From Paragordius varius (lineage: Eukaryota > Animalia > Nematomorpha), in NCBI GenBank assembly GCA_964247055.1, contig OZ176052.1, positions 10,850,001 through 10,914,000 of the forward strand: DNA of 64,000 nucleotides, given 5' to 3'. Within the stretch, counting starts at the first letter, position 1; each line of letters opens with the position of its first letter. This document shows positions 9,928 to 57,912 of the stretch, piece after piece. The notes below the pieces were generated by a model. The model was not told where the DNA came from and made no database searches. It saw only the letters and a program-made list of their open reading frames with translations. The translations under genes and the position numbers were made by a program.

Positions 9928-10116
9928 AATCCTGAAATGTCTCTACTTGGCAGCATAATATGCCAAAATCTCTCCTGCTTCGGCCACATTATGAGATCCA
10001 CACTCGAAAAGTCACTGCTTGGTGCTCGTAAAAGAGGAAGAAGAACTCGCAGGATGGATAACATCCTTATAGAAACAAACCAAACATTAGCCGAACTAAA
10101 CGAGTATTCACAATAA
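9928..10116 (+). mobile_element. 3' fragment of an RTE-clade LINE ORF
   Basis: Translates PEMSLLGSIICQNLSCFGHIMRSTLEKSLLGARKRGRRTRRMDNI, resembling the RTE/BovB C-terminal pattern LxYFGHxMR...SLEKxxxLG...RxRGRxRxRWxD. Confidence 0.75.
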
Positions 10117-10279
10117 GTTAGTTAATCGGAATCGACCTTAGCAACAAACAAATGGGGAAGGTAATTTATTTTTAAACTCCTTTAATAGGATTAAAAACTT
10201 TGTTCAAAAATTTTAAGGTCATTTAACTGAAATTTGACCGGTTCACATAAAATTCTAGTAGCGCCACTAATGTTTAATG

Positions 10280-10821
10280 CAGAGATGTTCAACGAAATGG
10301 CTTGGCGGGCCGCATTTTTAACTCAAAAAACGGGGGACCGTATTGCAAAAATTACAACAGATGGACAATAATTATTTTATTATATTCAATTTTGAGGCTT
10401 TAAAGAAGTTTAAAACCAGGATATATCTGCTAATTATTATAAGTTAGTTCATTTTCATAATTAGGAAAATCAACACGTTAGTTTAACATCAATAAAAAAA
10501 TTAAATCTAACGGTTTAATATTTGAATAAATAATTTTTGGCCTAATATATTAGTACGTTTCAAAATTCATAAAAGTTAATATGTGGTATGTAAATAAATA
10601 TTTAACGGCTTTGAGATAACTTATAAGCGAATAATGGTCTTAATAAACAAAATAGATATAATCAATAAAAAAATATTTTAATGTAAATGATATAAATTTT
10701 GTACTTTTACTAAGATATTTGATAAAATAATGTTTTTATTTGGTTATTTTTTAAAAAAATTTCGCAAGCCGTATATTTTTTGGATCGCGTGTGGCCCGCT
10801 GGCCGCATGTTGGGCACTTTG
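10280..10821. mobile_element. hAT (Buster/Charlie-like) MITE
   Basis: Ends CAGAGATGTTCAAC and GTTGGGCACTTTG, with GCGGGCCGCA/TGGCCCGC subterminal motifs. Flanks GTTTAATG / GTTTAAGT (nnnTAnnn). Confidence 0.7.
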
Positions 10822-11847
10822 GTTTAAGTATAACGCAAGATTGTGTTATAAATAAACTCAATATTGCAAAAATATAATCATTAACATATAATTTTCATAA
10901 CTAATTTAACATTACTTTATTTATAACACCGAAAATCTAATATATATTAAATTAAAAATAATAAATTATATTAGTATATTTGCAGCCAATTTTTTTGAAA
11001 AAAAAACGTTTTTAATGATTAAGCGTTATAAATATAAAGAATGAATATGGTAAATTAGAGAATACCTATGTGTAATAGAATAAGCTTGGTGGTATAGGGT
11101 AGATCGCAATAAAATACTATATCACAATGAATGGGCAGTGTTGAATCACAGATAAGTATATAAACGACAATTTTTTGGTCACAAATTAATTTTTGCAAAT
11201 TATCACAGCGGATATTTAATTGATTTTATTTTAGCTTTATTTCATTAATTACCATCAATTATCAATTTTTTATTTAATATATTTCAAATAAAATGGCAAG
11301 AAAAAAGTAAAAACGAAGATGATAAAAGATAGTGTATGCACTACGCAAGAGAAACGAATCGAAATGTATTTTAGTAGGGCATGCGCGCGCGTACTTTTAC
11401 TTTTTTTACGATATTGTAATATTTTTGCCTCAATACTATAAATAAGAAGACCCATACATACATACATACTCTATTCTTTAAATTTTATCTTTACACATAC
11501 CTAACTTAACCCTTCTGGGTTTATAAACATACGCACACACCACAAAACCTGAATAATTGTCAACATTATTATTAAAAAGGGGGGTTTGTGGTTTATATCT
11601 ATACTATCTAAATATAGTTTTTATAAGGTTGTGTTTATTAATTGTTAACAAAGGTGTGCAACCTCAATAATTGTTTTATATTCGATGTTTGATCATTTCT
11701 TAGTCAAATTTATAACATTTTATTCTAATATTGTAAATAGACGATATCGTGGGTATAATACGCAAAACCACAAAATGTATACCGTTTTTATAAAAGCTAA
11801 CTTTGCCTTCGGGTTTAATGTGTATGAAAGGGAAATTGAGAAAAAAC

Positions 11848-11857
11848 GCTGAGTCAT
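11848..11857 (-). promoter_or_regulatory. ARE / CNC-sMaf binding element upstream of cnc
   Basis: GCTGAGTCAT = ATGACTCAGC on the minus strand, an exact RTGAYnnnGC match with an AP-1 core. Lies ~2.3 kb 5' of the first predicted coding exon. Confidence 0.4.
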
Positions 11858-12794
11858 ATATTATAATACTAAATATATATATTATGCGTTCGTACATTAT
11901 TGATTAATTTCATGCTTTATATATAAGCATGTATGTCAAAAAGCACTACACTTTGTGTGTATGATGTATCTTTTACCCTCTATTTTTGCAGCGATAAATA
12001 TAATATAAACCCTAAGGCATATTATATGTAATAATAAATTTCAAGGTCACACGCGCTTTATAAAAAAGTAAGTAGTATTGAGTATATATTGGAAAATTAT
12101 ATTAGATACACTAAGATATAAATAAGAGATAATTGTGTGGTTGTTGGCCCTTATTCAAATTGGCTCATATCCCGCCCCATTGCGTTATGTTTATTTGTTG
12201 ACAATATTGTAGCAAAAGAGAATAATGCAATGGTTACTATAAATATATATGACCTACTTTGATCTTGTTTAAACAAATGAAGGGCCAACTGATTGCGGTC
12301 AAATTCTAAATATATCACAAATATAGAGATATATATAGCGTTGAGTCTGACCGGTTTTCAATGCACTCATGACCGTGAAAAGCACACAATAGAGTTTAAA
12401 CGCCGTTTGTGAATATATAAATATGATATAATGGCATAAACTTTTATTAAATTTAAATTTTATTGAATCCATCAATTGTTTTTGTTATCATATAATTCAA
12501 ACTATATAAACCGATTTAAACGGTGGGCTTTATTTAATTTGGTTTACAGCAAGATATATATTTCTGTGGGAAAGATAACTAGCAACATCAATGCAGCCAG
12601 CCGGTAAGAAACCAAACCCTATGGGTAGTTTGTAGGTTCTAATTTTAAAAATTGGTGATGGAATAATGGATGCTTTCTTTATTTAAATTTGAATAGTTAA
12701 AATGGTTATTTCTTTTAATTTAGTTATGATATGGTATAGAAATAAAATAATACTGATACTGAACAATAACTCCGCAGTTTAATAAAATTTATTT

Positions 12795-13184
12795 AGGAAA
12801 AAAAGTTACACATCAAAATAACTGGACGCCATTTTTATTTTTCAACATTTTTGCAAATATCGTGTTTAATTGATTCTAATGCTAACATTCGAGTTAAATT
12901 TTTGGTTAAACTAAAGATTAAAATTCAAATAAACAGTTAAAGTGGTTAATATTGCATTTTTATTTTTGGATAATGTTCATATGTCGCGACTAAGTTTTAT
13001 CTTTAGGTTAATCAAAATAAGTAATTTAAAGTTTTGTTGAAGTTTTTTATACTTCGGTGCATCAATGTTATATAAACGCATTTGCAATAGTTCCATATTT
13101 TTTGGATATTTGAAAACAGGCCTGGGGTCCCCAATGACCCCAATTTAAATCGGAGGACTGAAATGTATGTGTTGTATCTAAGTG
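12795..13184 (-). mobile_element. Family A piggyBac-like MITE, partial, inverted
   Basis: Ends CCCAATTTAAATCGGAGGACTGAAATGTATGTGTTGTATCTAAGTG plus TTAA (13185-13188). Left boundary approximate. Confidence 0.75.
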
Positions 13185-15569: not shown

Positions 15570-16302
15570 TTAATATGGCATCTATAGTGAATATCCCTTT
15601 TAAAATCGCATATAAAAAAATATAATGATAAAAATTACGATTTTCCCAACCCTTTTATACAATAATTTTAAGTGTTAGTTGTTAGTGCCTCCGACGCCCT
15701 TTCATCACACTTCTTTTACTTTTTTGATAAATATGATATGGTTAATACCATTGTTTTTTCATTCTTTACCAAATATTTTGACCCATTTAACGAAAAAAAG
15801 TAAATTTTTGATAAAATAAATGATACATGACTGTAAGTAATGTATATTCCTATTTTTTGGAGGCATTTGAAAATAATTTTAGCACCCAGTAAAGAACGAT
15901 TGATGGTGTTTATAAAATAAGTATATTTCTTCAATTAAAAATTATTTATCAAAAAATAATTCTAATAGGAGAAAAATGAAAAATATAAAAACTATCATTG
16001 TAAAATAAACTTGTTGAAAAATATATATTTGCTATTATATGTGATTTAAAAATTTAGCGGGCCGTACAAAAAATTGTGAAGGATGGCTGCCCGCCTGAAC
16101 ATTCTGCTGGAGAAGTTATGAAATTGTAATATAAATTTTTTTGTAATAGATAATAGTTTTTAAATTTTAGTTGAACTATACTTAATTTTTTATTAAAATA
16201 ACCTCTGGATCAAAAAAAACTCCAATAGTGTTTATTATGATGTATTAGTCATAATTAAGCTTAAAAAAAGTTTAAAAGTCAGACAGGCTTTCTACCGATT
16301 AA

Positions 16303-16741
16303 CACTTCGATTCAAATTGGGGTATCTAAATACCCCAGACTAAATTTTAGTTAGAATTTTTAGAAAACTACTGAAGGAATTGGTCCCAATTTAAATTTTA
16401 TGTTTTCCTATCCTAAAAAAATTATATGAATATACCAAAGTATCTAAATAATTTTTGTTTTAAAAAATAAGTTTCATGTCAAACTACATCGACGCCATTT
16501 TTATTTTACAAAATTTTTGGAAAATATCGTTTTTATGTAATTTTAAGGGTAAAATTGAAGGTTTTTTTTAAATTACATAACATTGATAGAATAGAAAAAG
16601 CGGTTTATTTTGTATTAATATTTAATTTAGATTTTGTACATATGTTACGTTGACTAAATTTTTACCTTTCGGTTTTAGCCTAAAATAATCAATATTAAGT
16701 ATTTTGAATAAATTTTTTTTAAATATTTTTGTATTCAAGTG
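16303..16741 (-). mobile_element. Family A piggyBac-like MITE, internally deleted, immediately upstream of ACTMAP
   Basis: TTAA at 16299-16302 and 16742-16745. Both termini present; ~120 bp of one arm missing. Confidence 0.82.
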
Positions 16742-16820
16742 TTAAGATATTTAGGTTGTTTACCACATGTTTTTAAAGTTTACCATATGACATTAATCGG
16801 AGTGATTTCCAAGTTTTGCG

Positions 16821-17572
16821 ATGATGGGTATGTTTTTTATTATTTTTTAGATATTTCGAAAATATTTTTATACAATGATTTAACCGCATATGTTGATAAG
16901 GCCGAATATAAAATTTTTGTTAATAATAACTATATTAATCCAATAATTCAACAAGGTCCTACATGTGGCTTAGTTTTATTATCTATGATAAGCGGGATGA
17001 GTGTGGACAAAATATATAATATTGCTAAATCATATAAATTTACAAACTGCGGAGAAATATTCTCTATTGTTCATTTCAACAAATTAGCTATTATGTGTGG
17101 ACTTGATTCAACCCTCAATTCTTTAGACGATTCAATAACATATAATTTTTTCGAATATATTGCGAATGGAAAATTGATTATTTTAGCATATGATTCTGAT
17201 AAGGATTTTAGGCCTTGTTGTGTCAATGGTACTAAAGCTCATTGGGCTGTTTTAACAGGGTTTGTATTTGTCCTAAAATCGGAATCATGCCACATTTCCA
17301 CCTCACCTCTTTTAAACTATAAAAATGTGTATAAACATGAAGCAAGTAGAAAAATTTTAGAACCTCTTGACCTATTTCTCATAGCACAACATGGTAAATC
17401 GAAAAACAGTGCTGTCTGGGCCTATAATGATCTTGTTAAGAGTAACAAAAATTTAATGGATATGGGAGACCATAATCGTCAAAGATTAGGCTATCATAAT
17501 GGACATATTGATTTAAATTTAACCCTTGCCAATCAATATTTAGTTATAACGCCTCCTCCATATCTTTTTTAG
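16821..17572 (+). CDS. ACTMAP: Actin maturation protease (C19orf54/UPF0692 family)
   Basis: Motifs PIIQQGPTCGLV (catalytic Cys), AYDSDKDFRPC...GTKAHWAVLTG and QHGKSK...W...V.SN. Start is either ATG 16821/16824 plus a 23-nt intron (16828-16850), or unspliced ATG 16787. Confidence 0.88.
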
Positions 17573-17583
17573 GTCCTTAAAGT

Positions 17584-20500
17584 ATGTGTGCTAATCGTTT
17601 GCTTCAACTTAGTTTGGTATATCAAAGGCAAATCCTAGCTCAGCATTTAAAGTTCATACATTTTTTACCAAATGTTGGTAATCGCTCTATATTGAAACAA
17701 TGTCAGACGCATCATCATCAATTATTTCACACCTCGCAAAAAAGGCCATCTCCAATTTTATGGGTCTTGCTTAAACCACTCCTCAAAATTGGAGCTATTT
17801 TATCGGGCCGGCGAATTCGATATTGGTTAAAAAGTGATCCTAAAAACAAGATTTTGGCTATCAAAGAAATCCGAAAAAATAAACATTGGATAGCGAAAAT
17901 TGGGATTGGTATCACTTTGTATGGTTTTTACTATTACTATACACATTTGGAGGAAACACCCATAACGCATAGGAAACGGTTTATCGCATTTTCCCAAACC
18001 CAATTTGAAAAGATTGCCGACTTTGAATCCAAAATAGTATGATTGATTTTTTATATCCATTTATGTCTCAATCTATTTTTACTAACTTTGATTATACAAT
18101 AGACTAACATTGCTCCAATTATCTAATGTATATATTAGTTTATTTAAATTGGATTTTAATAGCATGTTATTATATTAATTTATGGAAACATCTGTGTAAA
18201 ATATATCTTCATTTATTTTAAATTGTCCCTTTTGGAAATATAGCAAACCTCAGCACTTCAAGGCAAAATTATAACTAGGAATCATCCATATTACTCAATA
18301 GTCATAAGTGTTTTACGCCGATTATTTGATGCAAACAAGGATATACCTCAATTGGATAAAATGCGTCATTGGAATGTTTCAATTATAGATGACCCGGGTG
18401 TTAATGCCTTTGTTTTGCCTGTAACATTTTATTTAACAATTTGAAAATTATCAATATTTTTGGCATTTTATATGGATTATTTAGATGATAATGAGCAATT
18501 TTACTTTATATAAGGGAAAAATTATTGGTCTTCGGTTTGTGTTACACATAATTTCTTGAAATAAGGCGGTTCAAATACTGTTTTGGTTTAGTGGTTATCA
18601 GTTTTAAATTTTCTGAGAGCTATTTAAATTATGGCACAAAAATTACTTACGTAAATATTAATACACTTTTATGATTTAAATAAGGAAACAATTTATTGAA
18701 AATAAGGTTAACATCAATAAATTTAAAGAAAATATAATATTTTGAACCGCGGTCCCTGTTTTTAAACGGCTTCGTAACCATTTTCGAATTTAACGGTCCT
18801 AAAAAAGCAAATAATTTTATTCCGATCCCAATTAATATTTACTTATGTTATTACACAGGTAAATTAAATTAACCTAATATATAAATTTTTTAGAATGGTC
18901 AAATATACGTTTTTGCTGGGATGCTTAAACTCGTCCAAAATGTTGATCAATTAGGGATTGTTTTAGGACATGAAATGTCACATGCTCTTTTGGGTCATGC
19001 GGTAATATTATATCATGATTTTCAATTAAATTTTGACTCTTAATGTCAAATTGTTATGTTAGTCTTAAATAGTTTGACCAGTATCCGATTCATTGTTTTG
19101 ATCATACCCTTTTACAATAAAAATATTTTGAAGTTTTTGTTTTATAATTATTTAAGAGATATGTAGAAAAAAATAAATTAAGAATTTCAACTCTCTATGA
19201 TCGCCTAAAATACCTACTAACGACTCATTTTTTGTAAAGTACGCAACCTATAACGGTCGTATACAGAAATACATGATTTTTTTATGATTCGCATGAAGGT
19301 GTAAATTGTTAACTTGCGAAAATTTTCAATAAAGAGGGATATATTAAAGGTAAATAAGACCTCTTATTATATTTTTTAAACATATATATGTCCACATATA
19401 GATTGAATTAGTCAGTTATGCACATTTACTCGATTTTCTCATCATAATCGTGCTGGCTGCTTTATGGGCTTTTGTTCCAACTGATGGTATTGCTGTCATC
19501 ACTCAATGGTTTTACCAAAAAGTTATTGATGTAAGAATTTTTTAGTTTATCTATCGGTTATTTTCTCTTTTAGAACAAAAAACTTATTTTTTGGTCTTTT
19601 TAATTAAATATATGTGGACTCTTTCTAAATATTTATGCAACTAGGTGGCTTATTTTTCAACAAATGCTTATTATATGATATAAATAGTATAAATAAAATT
19701 TATTTAACCTATTTATTGTGTTAATATAAATTGATAATACTATATATTTTTAATTGAATTCTTTTGTATTAAATAAATTTATAGTATTAATAGTGTTTAA
19801 TACCCTCAACGACTGCATTTATAAGCCATGCATACCATTTTTTGTTTTTGGCTAAAAATCTAACCTTATATGCAGCATTTGATAAACTTAACATGTTCAA
19901 TAATTAAATTTATACTGTCTGATAGATCATATTACAAATGCCATACAGTCGTAAACTTGAAAGTGAGGCGGATTTCGTTGGTTTGGAACTTGCATCAAAA
20001 GTAAATTAATTGCTTTTTGTTATAAAATGTCTCAATGGTATATTAAATATCTTTTCCACAATCGTTTAGAGTTTTTATTAAATTTGTTATTTATTATATC
20101 TCTTAACATTGGACTGTTTGTTAGGCATGTTTTGACGTACGGGAAGCAGTTAAATTTTGGAAAATTATGGAATGGTACCAAAAACATGGCAAAAAAGTAC
20201 AAGGAGGCGAAGGTCTAGTCATAACACCACCTGAATGGTTAAGTACACATCCTGCCAATGAGAAAAGAGCTGAATATCTTGAAAACCTATTACCAAAAGT
20301 TTAAAATTTGTTTGTACCCATATATTTGAAAATTAAATCGCTCAAAAAATTAGGGATTTGTAATTTTTGTTCGTTATTTATTATTTATAAGTTCATTAAT
20401 ATTTTATTCCAATGTTTTAATTTCATCTTAAAAATTTATTCATATATACTGGTAATCATAAATAATCAATAATTTTATATTGTTAACCTTTTTATAATTC

Positions 20501-56462: not shown

Positions 56463-57912
56463 TTATGAATTTATTGCTGTATTTAATGCAATAAAAGAAT
56501 ATATTATACCAATTGTACCGAATAACATTCCAAATATAATGATTGACAATTCAAAATAAAAAAATTTCGTGGACAATGTTTTTCCCTTTAATTTTATGTG
56601 AAAGTAGCATGGCCAAACAAAAGATAAAAGCGTGCCGGTAAAGCAGCCAATAAGTCCCATTAAATTGTTAAAATATGGTATCATAACTGCCATAATTAAT
56701 GTTATAGCAATGAGAAATAATCTCAAAAGTATTGCCCAATTTTTAAATTTAAGTCCATTTAAATCCATGCATGAAGGAAATCTTTCATTATTAAAAAATG
56801 ACGTTTCAATTAATTCGGCCGCTGCAAAATAGGGCAGTGGGTATGAAAACAACGCCTTGCATACCAAAATAAAATTTACTAACATTTTAATCTTCAAATT
56901 TTCTAAATTGTTGGTGATGACTTCTTGAGTGTATAGTCCATATGTCACATAGCCAATATACCTAATATTACTATATATTTTACCCAAATAAGGCTTTGAA
57001 TAAAGCAGCAGCAATGTGGCTCCATTTTAACATAGGTTTGAAGTCTTCATTATGACTCAAGTTCCCTTCTAACGCTGGTAGGAACATATGAGATGTATAA
57101 CTAAAAACGATAACGCCCATAGAAACAGGAAAGTTCCATATATCAATTTTAAATTTTACATCCCGCCAATGCCAGTATTGTATTTTTAACACGCAATAAA
57201 CAATAACGATTATATTGATGAGTAAATGAACAATAGTACATGCAAAACTGAATCTCGATATCCCTGTCAGAGTTTTGATAAAGGCACATGGAATGAGGCA
57301 CAAACAACATAATGACATCCATGATACAGAGGACAATTTAACATATGGCAGAGCACCTTTCATAAGATCCCCGCACAAAACTACATATAGGATACATGTC
57401 ATAAGTAGTTCAATTAGTTGCGCCCCATTAACCACTATACTACCCCAAGTTTTTCCCCATACGGCTTGAGATATTGCCACATAACTGTTTCGTATCCTGT
57501 AATTAACGGCTACCTGAGATCTTTGTTCACAAGCTACATTGTTGTAATTAATTACTGGTCGCATTACTGTTTCTTCACGGGTTTCATATAAGCATTCAAT
57601 CAATATACAGCCCGTATAGTAACATATATAGGCTGCAAAGACCATAGCTAGTATTGCCCAATAACCGCCATTTAATACAGCATACGGCAGGCTAACGATG
57701 AACATTCCCTATGAAAAATATAAAAACGGAATGATTTTGATCATTATGAGTGGTTTAGAAAGCAGTATTACCTGAATAGCGTTCGTTACATTCCATCCTG
57801 CTTGCCAGGGTGTTATTTGGTTGCCCGGAATATCTCTATTTGTCCAAGTTGTATCCCTCCTTTCCAATTTTCCTTTTGCTCTTGTTGGCGGAAACGGTAA
57901 ATCTTCTACCAT
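56463..57912 (-). CDS. SLC32A1: Vesicular inhibitory amino acid (GABA/glycine) transporter
   Basis: Exons 57912-57772, 57708-56984, 56961-56463 (introns 63 and 22 nt). Motifs WQAGWNVTNAIQGMF, ELLMTCILYVVLCG, FSYTSHMFLPALEGN, KALFSYPLPYFAA. Confidence 0.92.

Follow-up and report, generated by a model that had tools for sequence, protein, structure and literature searches.

A tandem ACTMAP-OMA1 gene pair with an 11-nucleotide spacer in the hairworm Paragordius varius: a candidate dicistronic locus

As a rule, each eukaryotic gene has an mRNA of its own. How, then, is the second of two genes expressed when its start codon lies 11 nucleotides (nt) behind the stop codon of the first? This question is raised by a locus in the genome of the hairworm Paragordius varius (Nematomorpha), where a gene for the actin maturation protease ACTMAP directly precedes, in the same orientation, a gene for the mitochondrial M48 peptidase OMA1. 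The pair lies in a stretch of 64,000 nt, here called the window (assembly GCA_964247055.1, contig OZ176052.1, positions 10,850,001 to 10,914,000 of the forward strand; G000:C3:10850001-10914000 in the coordinates used below), and unless stated otherwise positions are counted from the first letter of the window. As set out below, ACTMAP and OMA1 probably form an old pair with a shared primary transcript, and a tentative route to an OMA1 mRNA by cis-splicing is proposed.

The junction between ACTMAP and OMA1

The upstream open reading frame (ORF; 16739-17572, + strand) ends in TAG 17570-17572, both in the sequence and in the list of ORFs, and the next ORF on the same strand opens with ATG 17584-17586. 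This ATG is the only one in the first exon of OMA1, a TAA in the same frame (17578-17580) lies ahead of it, and a stop codon is met in all three frames entered at 17573. OMA1 translation must therefore begin at ATG 17584, and a coding fusion of the two genes is impossible. The same stops rule out a splice into 17573 as a way of joining ACTMAP to OMA1 in frame, a possibility that was considered separately. Between 17400 and 18300, AATAAA occurs as a single copy, which is the first one 3' of the ACTMAP stop and lies inside OMA1 exon 1 (Table 1). The homologous codons in the distantly related hairworm Gordionus sp. are AAAAACAAA; the hexamer is probably a chance product of an AT-rich genome (the window has ~27% G+C), and it could act as a signal for ACTMAP 3'-end formation. 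In either case, the 3' untranslated region (UTR) of an ACTMAP mRNA necessarily lies within OMA1 exon 1 or further 3'. Since no 3' UTR, poly(A) signal or promoter could fit into the junction, ACTMAP and OMA1 are not independent genes in the ordinary sense. The initial annotation of this stretch had pointed out the 11-nt distance, a TAG that closes a pyrimidine tract and resembles a splice acceptor, the missing room for a poly(A) signal or promoter, and a GT at 17543 that does not yield an in-frame fusion; all of these observations hold in the sequence.

The identity of both genes is well documented. The upstream ORF matches the Pfam family PF21646 (ACTMAP-like_C) over nearly the whole profile (positions 2-121 of 121, E 1.5e-25) and carries the QGPTCG and HW motifs, as expected of an ACTMAP. 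An exhaustive protein search returned 522 relatives at E <= 0.001, and the two whose source names were looked up are both named “actin maturation protease”. The closest relative is that of Gordionus sp. (Nematomorpha; E 7e-32, 42% identity), followed by a second-best match at 2.5e-24. ACTMAP probably begins with a tiny first coding exon, as does its Gordionus homologue, in which a 44-nt intron comes next; the ATG at 16787, which lies in the same frame, would be an alternative start if the region is left unspliced. Counted from the ATG, the predicted 23-nt micro-intron of ACTMAP begins 7 nt into the coding sequence. At the other end of the protein, ACTMAP homologues terminate 1-9 residues past the same hydrophobic motif, and the tail that follows ...YLVI is not conserved: the residues TPPPYLF are absent from Gordionus and from the other homologues.

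The downstream gene could be modelled as six exons with GT-AG borders, which together comprise 373 codons with no internal stop in a frame check. The exons were searched singly, and the joined frame was used for length and stops only. Exon 3, which encodes the zinc-binding HEMSH sequence, matches PF01435 at E 6.3e-8, and exon 6 matches the same profile at E 2e-4, such that an HExxH motif, a match to the M48 profile and an intact multi-exon gene are all present. Exon 1, which encodes a poorly conserved N-terminus, shares 55% identity with its counterpart in the Peptidase_M48 gene of Gordionus (E 1e-26). In Gordionus, an intron (11419-13054 of locus L030, after ...KNKHWLMS) interrupts what is one first exon in Paragordius, and the N-terminus of the Gordionus protein is ~39 residues longer.

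The last 30 bases of ACTMAP (GTTATAACGCCTCCTCCATATCTTTTTTAG) have the appearance of a 3' splice site: a branch-like TTATAAC lies 24 nt upstream, and the AG of the stop codon is preceded by six T residues and, more broadly, by 17 pyrimidines in 20 positions. Such elements are rare. In the window, the density of T6AG is 0.19 per kb and strand; that of an AG after at least 17/20 pyrimidines, measured over 264 kb, is 0.106 per kb and strand, and on the + strand of the window the latter applies to 9 of 2,460 AGs. By chance, a site of this kind would end no more than 30 nt from a given ATG in roughly 0.3-1% of cases.

Table 1. Features of the ACTMAP-OMA1 locus, in window positions
Feature	Position	Strand	Remarks
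ACTMAP probable first coding exon	16821..16827	+	ATGATGG; strong donor GTATGT at 16828 follows
ACTMAP predicted micro-intron	16828..16850	+	23 nt, GT-AG, GTATGT...TTTTTTAG; predicted from sequence
ACTMAP main coding exon	16851..17572	+	ends ...LANQYLVITPPPYLF; stop TAG 17570-17572 included
Acceptor-like element overlapping ACTMAP C-terminus	17543..17572	+	TTATAAC 17544-17550; pyrimidines 17/20 (17551-17570); AG 17571-17572
Spacer	17573..17583	+	11 nt, GTCCTTAAAGT; TAA 17578-17580 in OMA1 frame
OMA1 exon 1	17584..18036	+	151 codons; presequence-like N-terminus and transmembrane region
AATAAA	17878..17883	+	306 nt past the ACTMAP stop; codons K-N-K of OMA1 exon 1
OMA1 exon 2	18244..18420	+	frame and GT-AG borders
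OMA1 exon 3	18894..19001	+	HEMSH zinc motif; PF01435
OMA1 exon 4	19402..19530	+	corresponds to Gordionus ORF 16169-16333
OMA1 exon 5	19926..20000	+	corresponds to Gordionus ORF 16688-16831
OMA1 exon 6	20125..20304	+	stop TAA 20302-20304; PF01435

Conservation and genomic setting of the pair

The two genes are also neighbours in Gordionus (GCA_954871325.2, locus L030), where the coding sequence of a 433-residue Peptidase_M48 protein starts at 10981, downstream of an ACTMAP coding sequence (10001-10845) and in the same orientation. The spacer of 135 nt holds three short upstream ATG-ORFs and one ATTAAA, with no AATAAA. A PF10237 gene that lies 8 kb upstream of the pair in Gordionus is, in Paragordius, separated from it by 7.7 Mb or located on a different contig, and the linkage of ACTMAP and OMA1 therefore exceeds background synteny, as judged from one comparison genome and one flanking gene. 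Because the pair was kept in Gordionus while this flanking gene was not, it appears to be old within the hairworms. OMA1 is not a neighbour of ACTMAP in a rotifer.

A generally compact genome does not account for the arrangement: the other gene-sized ORFs of the window are mostly spaced by ~1 kb or more. In 264 kb, the only tight tandem pairs are ACTMAP-OMA1 and VGAT-TTBK (92 nt), a sample that is, both for this census and for a comparison of gene orientations, too small or noisy to yield rates. The VGAT stop codon (56463-56465, - strand) precedes by 92 nt the first ATG (56370) of a TTBK-like kinase ORF, which has 1,343 codons and the same orientation. No acceptor precedes ATG 56370, and an AATAAA overlaps the end of VGAT; the two genes are a candidate second tandem unit, with a provisional TTBK start.

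Elsewhere in the genome, seven other tight pairs were inspected, five of which show no acceptor at the junction: an orphan ORF and CTU1 (29 nt), MSS4-MPDU1 (2 nt), PFDN1-TMEM199 (overlapping as TAATG), STMP1-PET100 (5 nt) and COX17-DPH3 (1 nt). PTRHD1-TMX2, with a spacer of 10 nt, has a weak junction acceptor. The acceptor near the NDUFAF8-UTP6 junction (3 nt) is that of a cis micro-intron in NDUFAF8, which is 26 nt long and ends 19 nt before the UTP6 ATG. When start codons rather than junctions are considered, a strong acceptor within 25 nt upstream is found at 2 of 14, a number that includes two alternative starts each for two genes. One of the two is OMA1; the other is the 268-residue orphan ORF upstream of CTU1, where a donor in cis lies 22 nt ahead of the acceptor.

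Some further observations concern these loci. A candidate 22-nt GT-AG micro-intron in the 5' UTR of the orphan ORF (L009 2154-2175; G000:C3:3531153-3531174) ends 2 nt before the ATG, and start-proximal micro-introns may be a rule of this genome. MPDU1 (L032, G000:C6:4624939-4628112, - strand; ATG at L032 1438) contains a very strong acceptor, TTTCTTCTTAATTTTTTACAG, ~33 nt inside its ORF, with no GT within 65 nt upstream and in phase 0. The donor of a 22-nt micro-intron in MSS4, located after codon 38, is in phase 0 as well, and a splice from MSS4 to MPDU1 would consequently be in frame.

The pair is conserved, the rest of the genome is roomy, and co-oriented pairs recur; a shared primary transcript is for these reasons the best reading of the locus. 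On this comparison of sequences, we consider it likely that ACTMAP-OMA1 is an old pair that shares a primary transcript, and that this transcript is resolved by means other than spliced leader (SL) trans-splicing.

Possible routes to an OMA1 mRNA

The exact mechanism is a more tentative matter. Our preferred proposal, which we put forward with less than even confidence, is that ACTMAP and OMA1 constitute one conserved head-to-tail transcription unit that is dicistronic and has alternative monocistronic products, as described for flies. A single promoter upstream of ACTMAP would serve both genes. Joining of the donor GTATGT at 16828 to the AG at 16850, 23 nt away, would produce the ACTMAP mRNA, which would run on into OMA1, and joining of the same donor to the T-rich AG at 17572 would skip the body of ACTMAP and produce an OMA1 mRNA. 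The 5' part of the latter would then contain a mini-ORF of 4 codons (ATG ATG GGT CCT TAA) and 3 further nt ahead of the OMA1 ATG; a donor farther upstream in the 5' UTR would serve equally. Under this proposal, the tail TPPPYLF of ACTMAP would be the translated 3' splice site of OMA1. Two complete, unrelated ORFs lie on the same strand at a short stop-to-start distance, as in known dicistronic loci, and donor and acceptor are both in place, with their joint use predicted only. An OMA1-specific mRNA is mechanistically attractive because 20 ATGs lie between the ACTMAP and OMA1 starts, which excludes leaky scanning as a route to OMA1. The initial annotation had named, as one of two options, a position of ACTMAP within a 5' intron of OMA1. 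This idea survives in modified form in the preferred reading, where donor 16828 and AG 17572 define the putative intron; that the two sites are used together is the predicted part.

Several observations weigh against this cis-splicing proposal. The stop codon and spacer of Gordionus contain no comparably strong acceptor, only ordinary AGs in the spacer, and the lack of a junction acceptor in five of the seven other tight pairs indicates that splicing is not a general solution to such junctions. Long pyrimidine tracts are, moreover, atypical of splice sites in this genome: the five acceptors of OMA1 itself have only 11-12 pyrimidines in 20 positions, and it is a short T-run before the AG, unlike a long tract, that typifies splicing here. 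The tract at the ACTMAP stop may be a by-product of the codons for Pro-Pro-Pro-Tyr-Leu-Phe. If the look-elsewhere effect across similar layouts in the genome is considered, one chance site of this kind would not be very unlikely, and a mini-ORF that ends 3 nt before the OMA1 ATG would be an inefficient design. Sequence word searches with the ACTMAP ORF, OMA1 exon 1 and the Gordionus ACTMAP gave no transcript-derived relatives, and an exact look-up of the 250-residue Gordionus isoform had no match. The tail TPPPYLF is compatible with a translated splice site or with a chance tail, and the odds that AG 17571-17572 is a used splice site are, as judged from its sequence, about even.

The other option named by the initial annotation was an operon-like unit, in which a polycistronic precursor is resolved by a spliced leader added at 17572/17573. 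The phylum Nematomorpha is commonly placed as sister to Nematoda, and OMA1 has, 11 nt ahead of its ATG, a strong acceptor (T6AG, 17/20 pyrimidines) with no obligatory cis donor, as is seen at the trans-splice sites of nematodes. Operons of Ciona and the rare SL1-type operons of C. elegans provide a precedent for tandem genes with essentially no intercistronic region (PMC7986045). Nevertheless, beyond the acceptor itself the analysis lends this option no support, and we regard it as improbable. The search for SL RNA genes that the annotation had suggested covered 110.5 Mb of assembly (110,561,105 bases in 44 pieces), in which the nematode SL1 22-mer followed by GT has no match at up to 3 mismatches; the Rfam models of SL1 and SL2 gave none either, in weak searches in which 50 of ~37,000 candidates were scored for each and which a lineage-specific leader could escape. 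A scan of the window against Rfam yielded no match of any kind, and the 29-nt core of the leader of Hormiphora californensis, a ctenophore with a known spliced leader in 718 copies (PMC8527503), is absent from the genome at up to 3 mismatches. The 5S rRNA genes are dispersed and not arranged in tandem arrays, their flanks not having been inspected for a linked SL gene. (Of the 20 matches to 5S that were reported, six lie on both strands within 26 kb, G000:C4:290000-316000, one of them below the family cut-off, and the rest are single.) The layout of the junction argues against trans-splicing as well: a stop codon, 3' UTR and poly(A) signal do not precede the putative trans-splice site, the AG of which is part of the stop codon itself, so that a complete ACTMAP mRNA cannot come from the same precursor as a trans-spliced OMA1 mRNA. 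Nor does the architecture recur at the other tight pairs, most of which lack a junction acceptor, or at many start codons, as a pervasive nematode-like pattern would entail. In the literature searched, we found no work that joins Nematomorpha with trans-splicing or a spliced leader; the publications retrieved on operons and polycistronic genes do not mention the phylum, and the hairworm genome papers that were searched mention neither operons nor trans-splicing. A more speculative and still less probable variant holds that hairworms have a spliced leader of their own, which would be added at 17573 and resolve this pair and perhaps also the other zero-spacer pairs, ACTMAP mRNAs being derived from precursors that escape trans-splicing. 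If true, SL trans-splicing and operons would occur in a phylum that is usually placed as sister to the nematodes, which would bear on the question of whether the nematode SL system predates the split or arose twice.

Three further explanations dispense with both a leader and the proposed skipping of ACTMAP. The AG might never be used, in which case OMA1 would be translated from a mature bicistronic mRNA by termination-reinitiation or internal ribosome entry. The very short spacer favours such coupling, stop-to-start distances are mostly near zero among the tight pairs (a TAATG overlap and 1, 2, 3, 5, 10 and 11 nt) while an acceptor is mostly absent, and the longer spacer of Gordionus is consistent with a contraction that was harmless or useful for coupling; in flies, loci exist at which dicistronic mRNAs alone supply both proteins (PMC4528330). 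These points are countered by the length of the upstream ORF, which comprises ~250 codons: reinitiation after long ORFs normally requires special elements. A termination upstream ribosome-binding site (TURBS), for instance, would comprise an 18S-complementary UGGGA motif and a structure, both no more than ~70 nt ahead of the restart codon. Here the nearest UGGGA lies 121 nt upstream, Gordionus has none, the RNA structure of the junction is unremarkable (z = +0.42), and three short ATG-ORFs lie in the Gordionus spacer. UGGGA was considered as a feature of the whole class of pairs, too; 3 of 6 carry one upstream, though at positions -94 to -148, and it is unconvincing. We thus consider a bicistronic mRNA unlikely, and the same grade applies to an internal promoter, by which OMA1 transcription would start inside the coding exon of ACTMAP, ACTMAP would be polyadenylated inside OMA1, and adjacency would be kept by the embedded promoter. 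No unusual RNA processing or translation is needed for this explanation; the spacer and ACTMAP 3' end of Gordionus could house a compact promoter, embedding would itself preserve the linkage, and AATAAA 17878 could terminate ACTMAP transcripts. Yet overlap is not forced in a genome with kilobase spacers elsewhere, the recurrence of co-oriented pairs 0-11 nt apart points to co-transcription, and a functional poly(A) site in OMA1 exon 1 would truncate OMA1 mRNAs. Lastly, the 30 nt from 17543 to 17572 (GTTATA...TTTTTTAG) could be a micro-intron of ACTMAP, the removal of which would eliminate the TAG and let the protein continue as ...LANQYL/VLKVCV... to a stop TAG at 17636-17638, and the extended gene would overlap the first 55 nt of OMA1; we give little credence to the intron or to the overlap that it implies. 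This genome has many micro-introns of 20-39 nt whose donors are of the GTT type, the 26-nt micro-intron of NDUFAF8 sets a precedent for one just ahead of a downstream ATG, and the codons that follow the AG, GTCCTTAAA (V-L-K), agree at 7 of 9 positions with the last three codons of Gordionus ACTMAP, TTACTTAAA (L-L-K), compared to 3 of 9 for the unspliced sequence. A match of 2-3 residues is, however, weak evidence, the spliced tail would extend 19 residues past the hydrophobic motif rather than the 1-9 of the homologues, and with 37% G+C and coding-type Pro codons the segment is unlike other micro-introns; by an estimate from base composition, a GT occurs 20-38 nt upstream of any AG in ~60% of cases by chance.

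Comparison with known systems and significance

The cholinergic locus (unc-17/cha-1, VAChT/ChAT), in which one gene is nested in the first intron of another and a 5' exon is shared, resembles the preferred reading in that one promoter and one 5' exon would serve two genes, alternative splicing would keep or skip the nested upstream gene, and the arrangement is conserved over long distances. It differs in that the shared exon of the hairworm locus would hold the upstream ATG, and with it the 4-codon mini-ORF, the products have no known functional link, and the splice is predicted. Termination-reinitiation is used by viruses, as exemplified by the TURBS of caliciviruses and the TAATG of influenza B M1/BM2. 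The hairworm junction shares with these the position of the downstream start, a few bases from the stop of a long upstream ORF, and lacks a nearby UGGGA as well as a stable structure. Green-algal polycistronic mRNAs and small-ORF bicistronic genes of the sloth1/sloth2 type depend on leaky scanning, by which ribosomes pass a short or weak upstream start; this is not an option for OMA1 with its 20 intervening ATGs. Two ORFs only a few bases apart are a common trait of the algal mRNAs (PMC7896298), fly sloth1/sloth2 (PMC9681215) and the ACTMAP-OMA1 locus, those of the first two residing on mature mRNAs.

With the SL-resolved operons of Ciona and the SL1-type operons of C. elegans, the pair shares co-orientation, an essentially missing spacer and an acceptor directly before the downstream ATG (PMC7986045). 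In those operons, zero spacer refers to the distance from poly(A) site to acceptor, not from stop codon to acceptor (PMC7986045); they keep an upstream 3' UTR and poly(A) signal before the acceptor, whereas here the AG belongs to the stop codon, the searches revealed no SL RNA gene, and an acceptor is missing from most of the other tight pairs. The layout is, by analogy, most like that of a fly-type dicistronic locus. In Drosophila, 159 dicistronic pairs are listed in the FlyBase catalogue with stop-to-start distances of -34 to 319 nt, and at many of these loci monocistronic variants arise via alternative promoters or via splicing that disrupts one coding region (PMC4528330). The hairworm pair likewise consists of two unrelated, complete ORFs on the same strand, its distance is within the fly range, and the fly loci operate without SL trans-splicing (PMC4528330). 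What sets it apart from them is the hairworm host, the long upstream ORF, the 11-nt spacer and the overlap of stop codon and acceptor-like site. A report of fly-type dicistronic loci in hairworms was not found.

ACTMAP-OMA1 is a further case, with an unusually long upstream gene, of a class of stop-to-start pairs that recurs in the hairworm genome and of which several members persist in a distant hairworm. Annotation of hairworm genomes must allow for such pairs, since standard gene-finding programs will merge, truncate or overlook them. If shared transcripts prove true, Nematomorpha would be one more lineage, beside flies, green algae and a few others, to possess a sizeable set of polycistronic loci, and the pair would provide a compact natural system for studying how the ribosome or the spliceosome reaches a second gene that lies 11 bases behind a gene of 250 codons.

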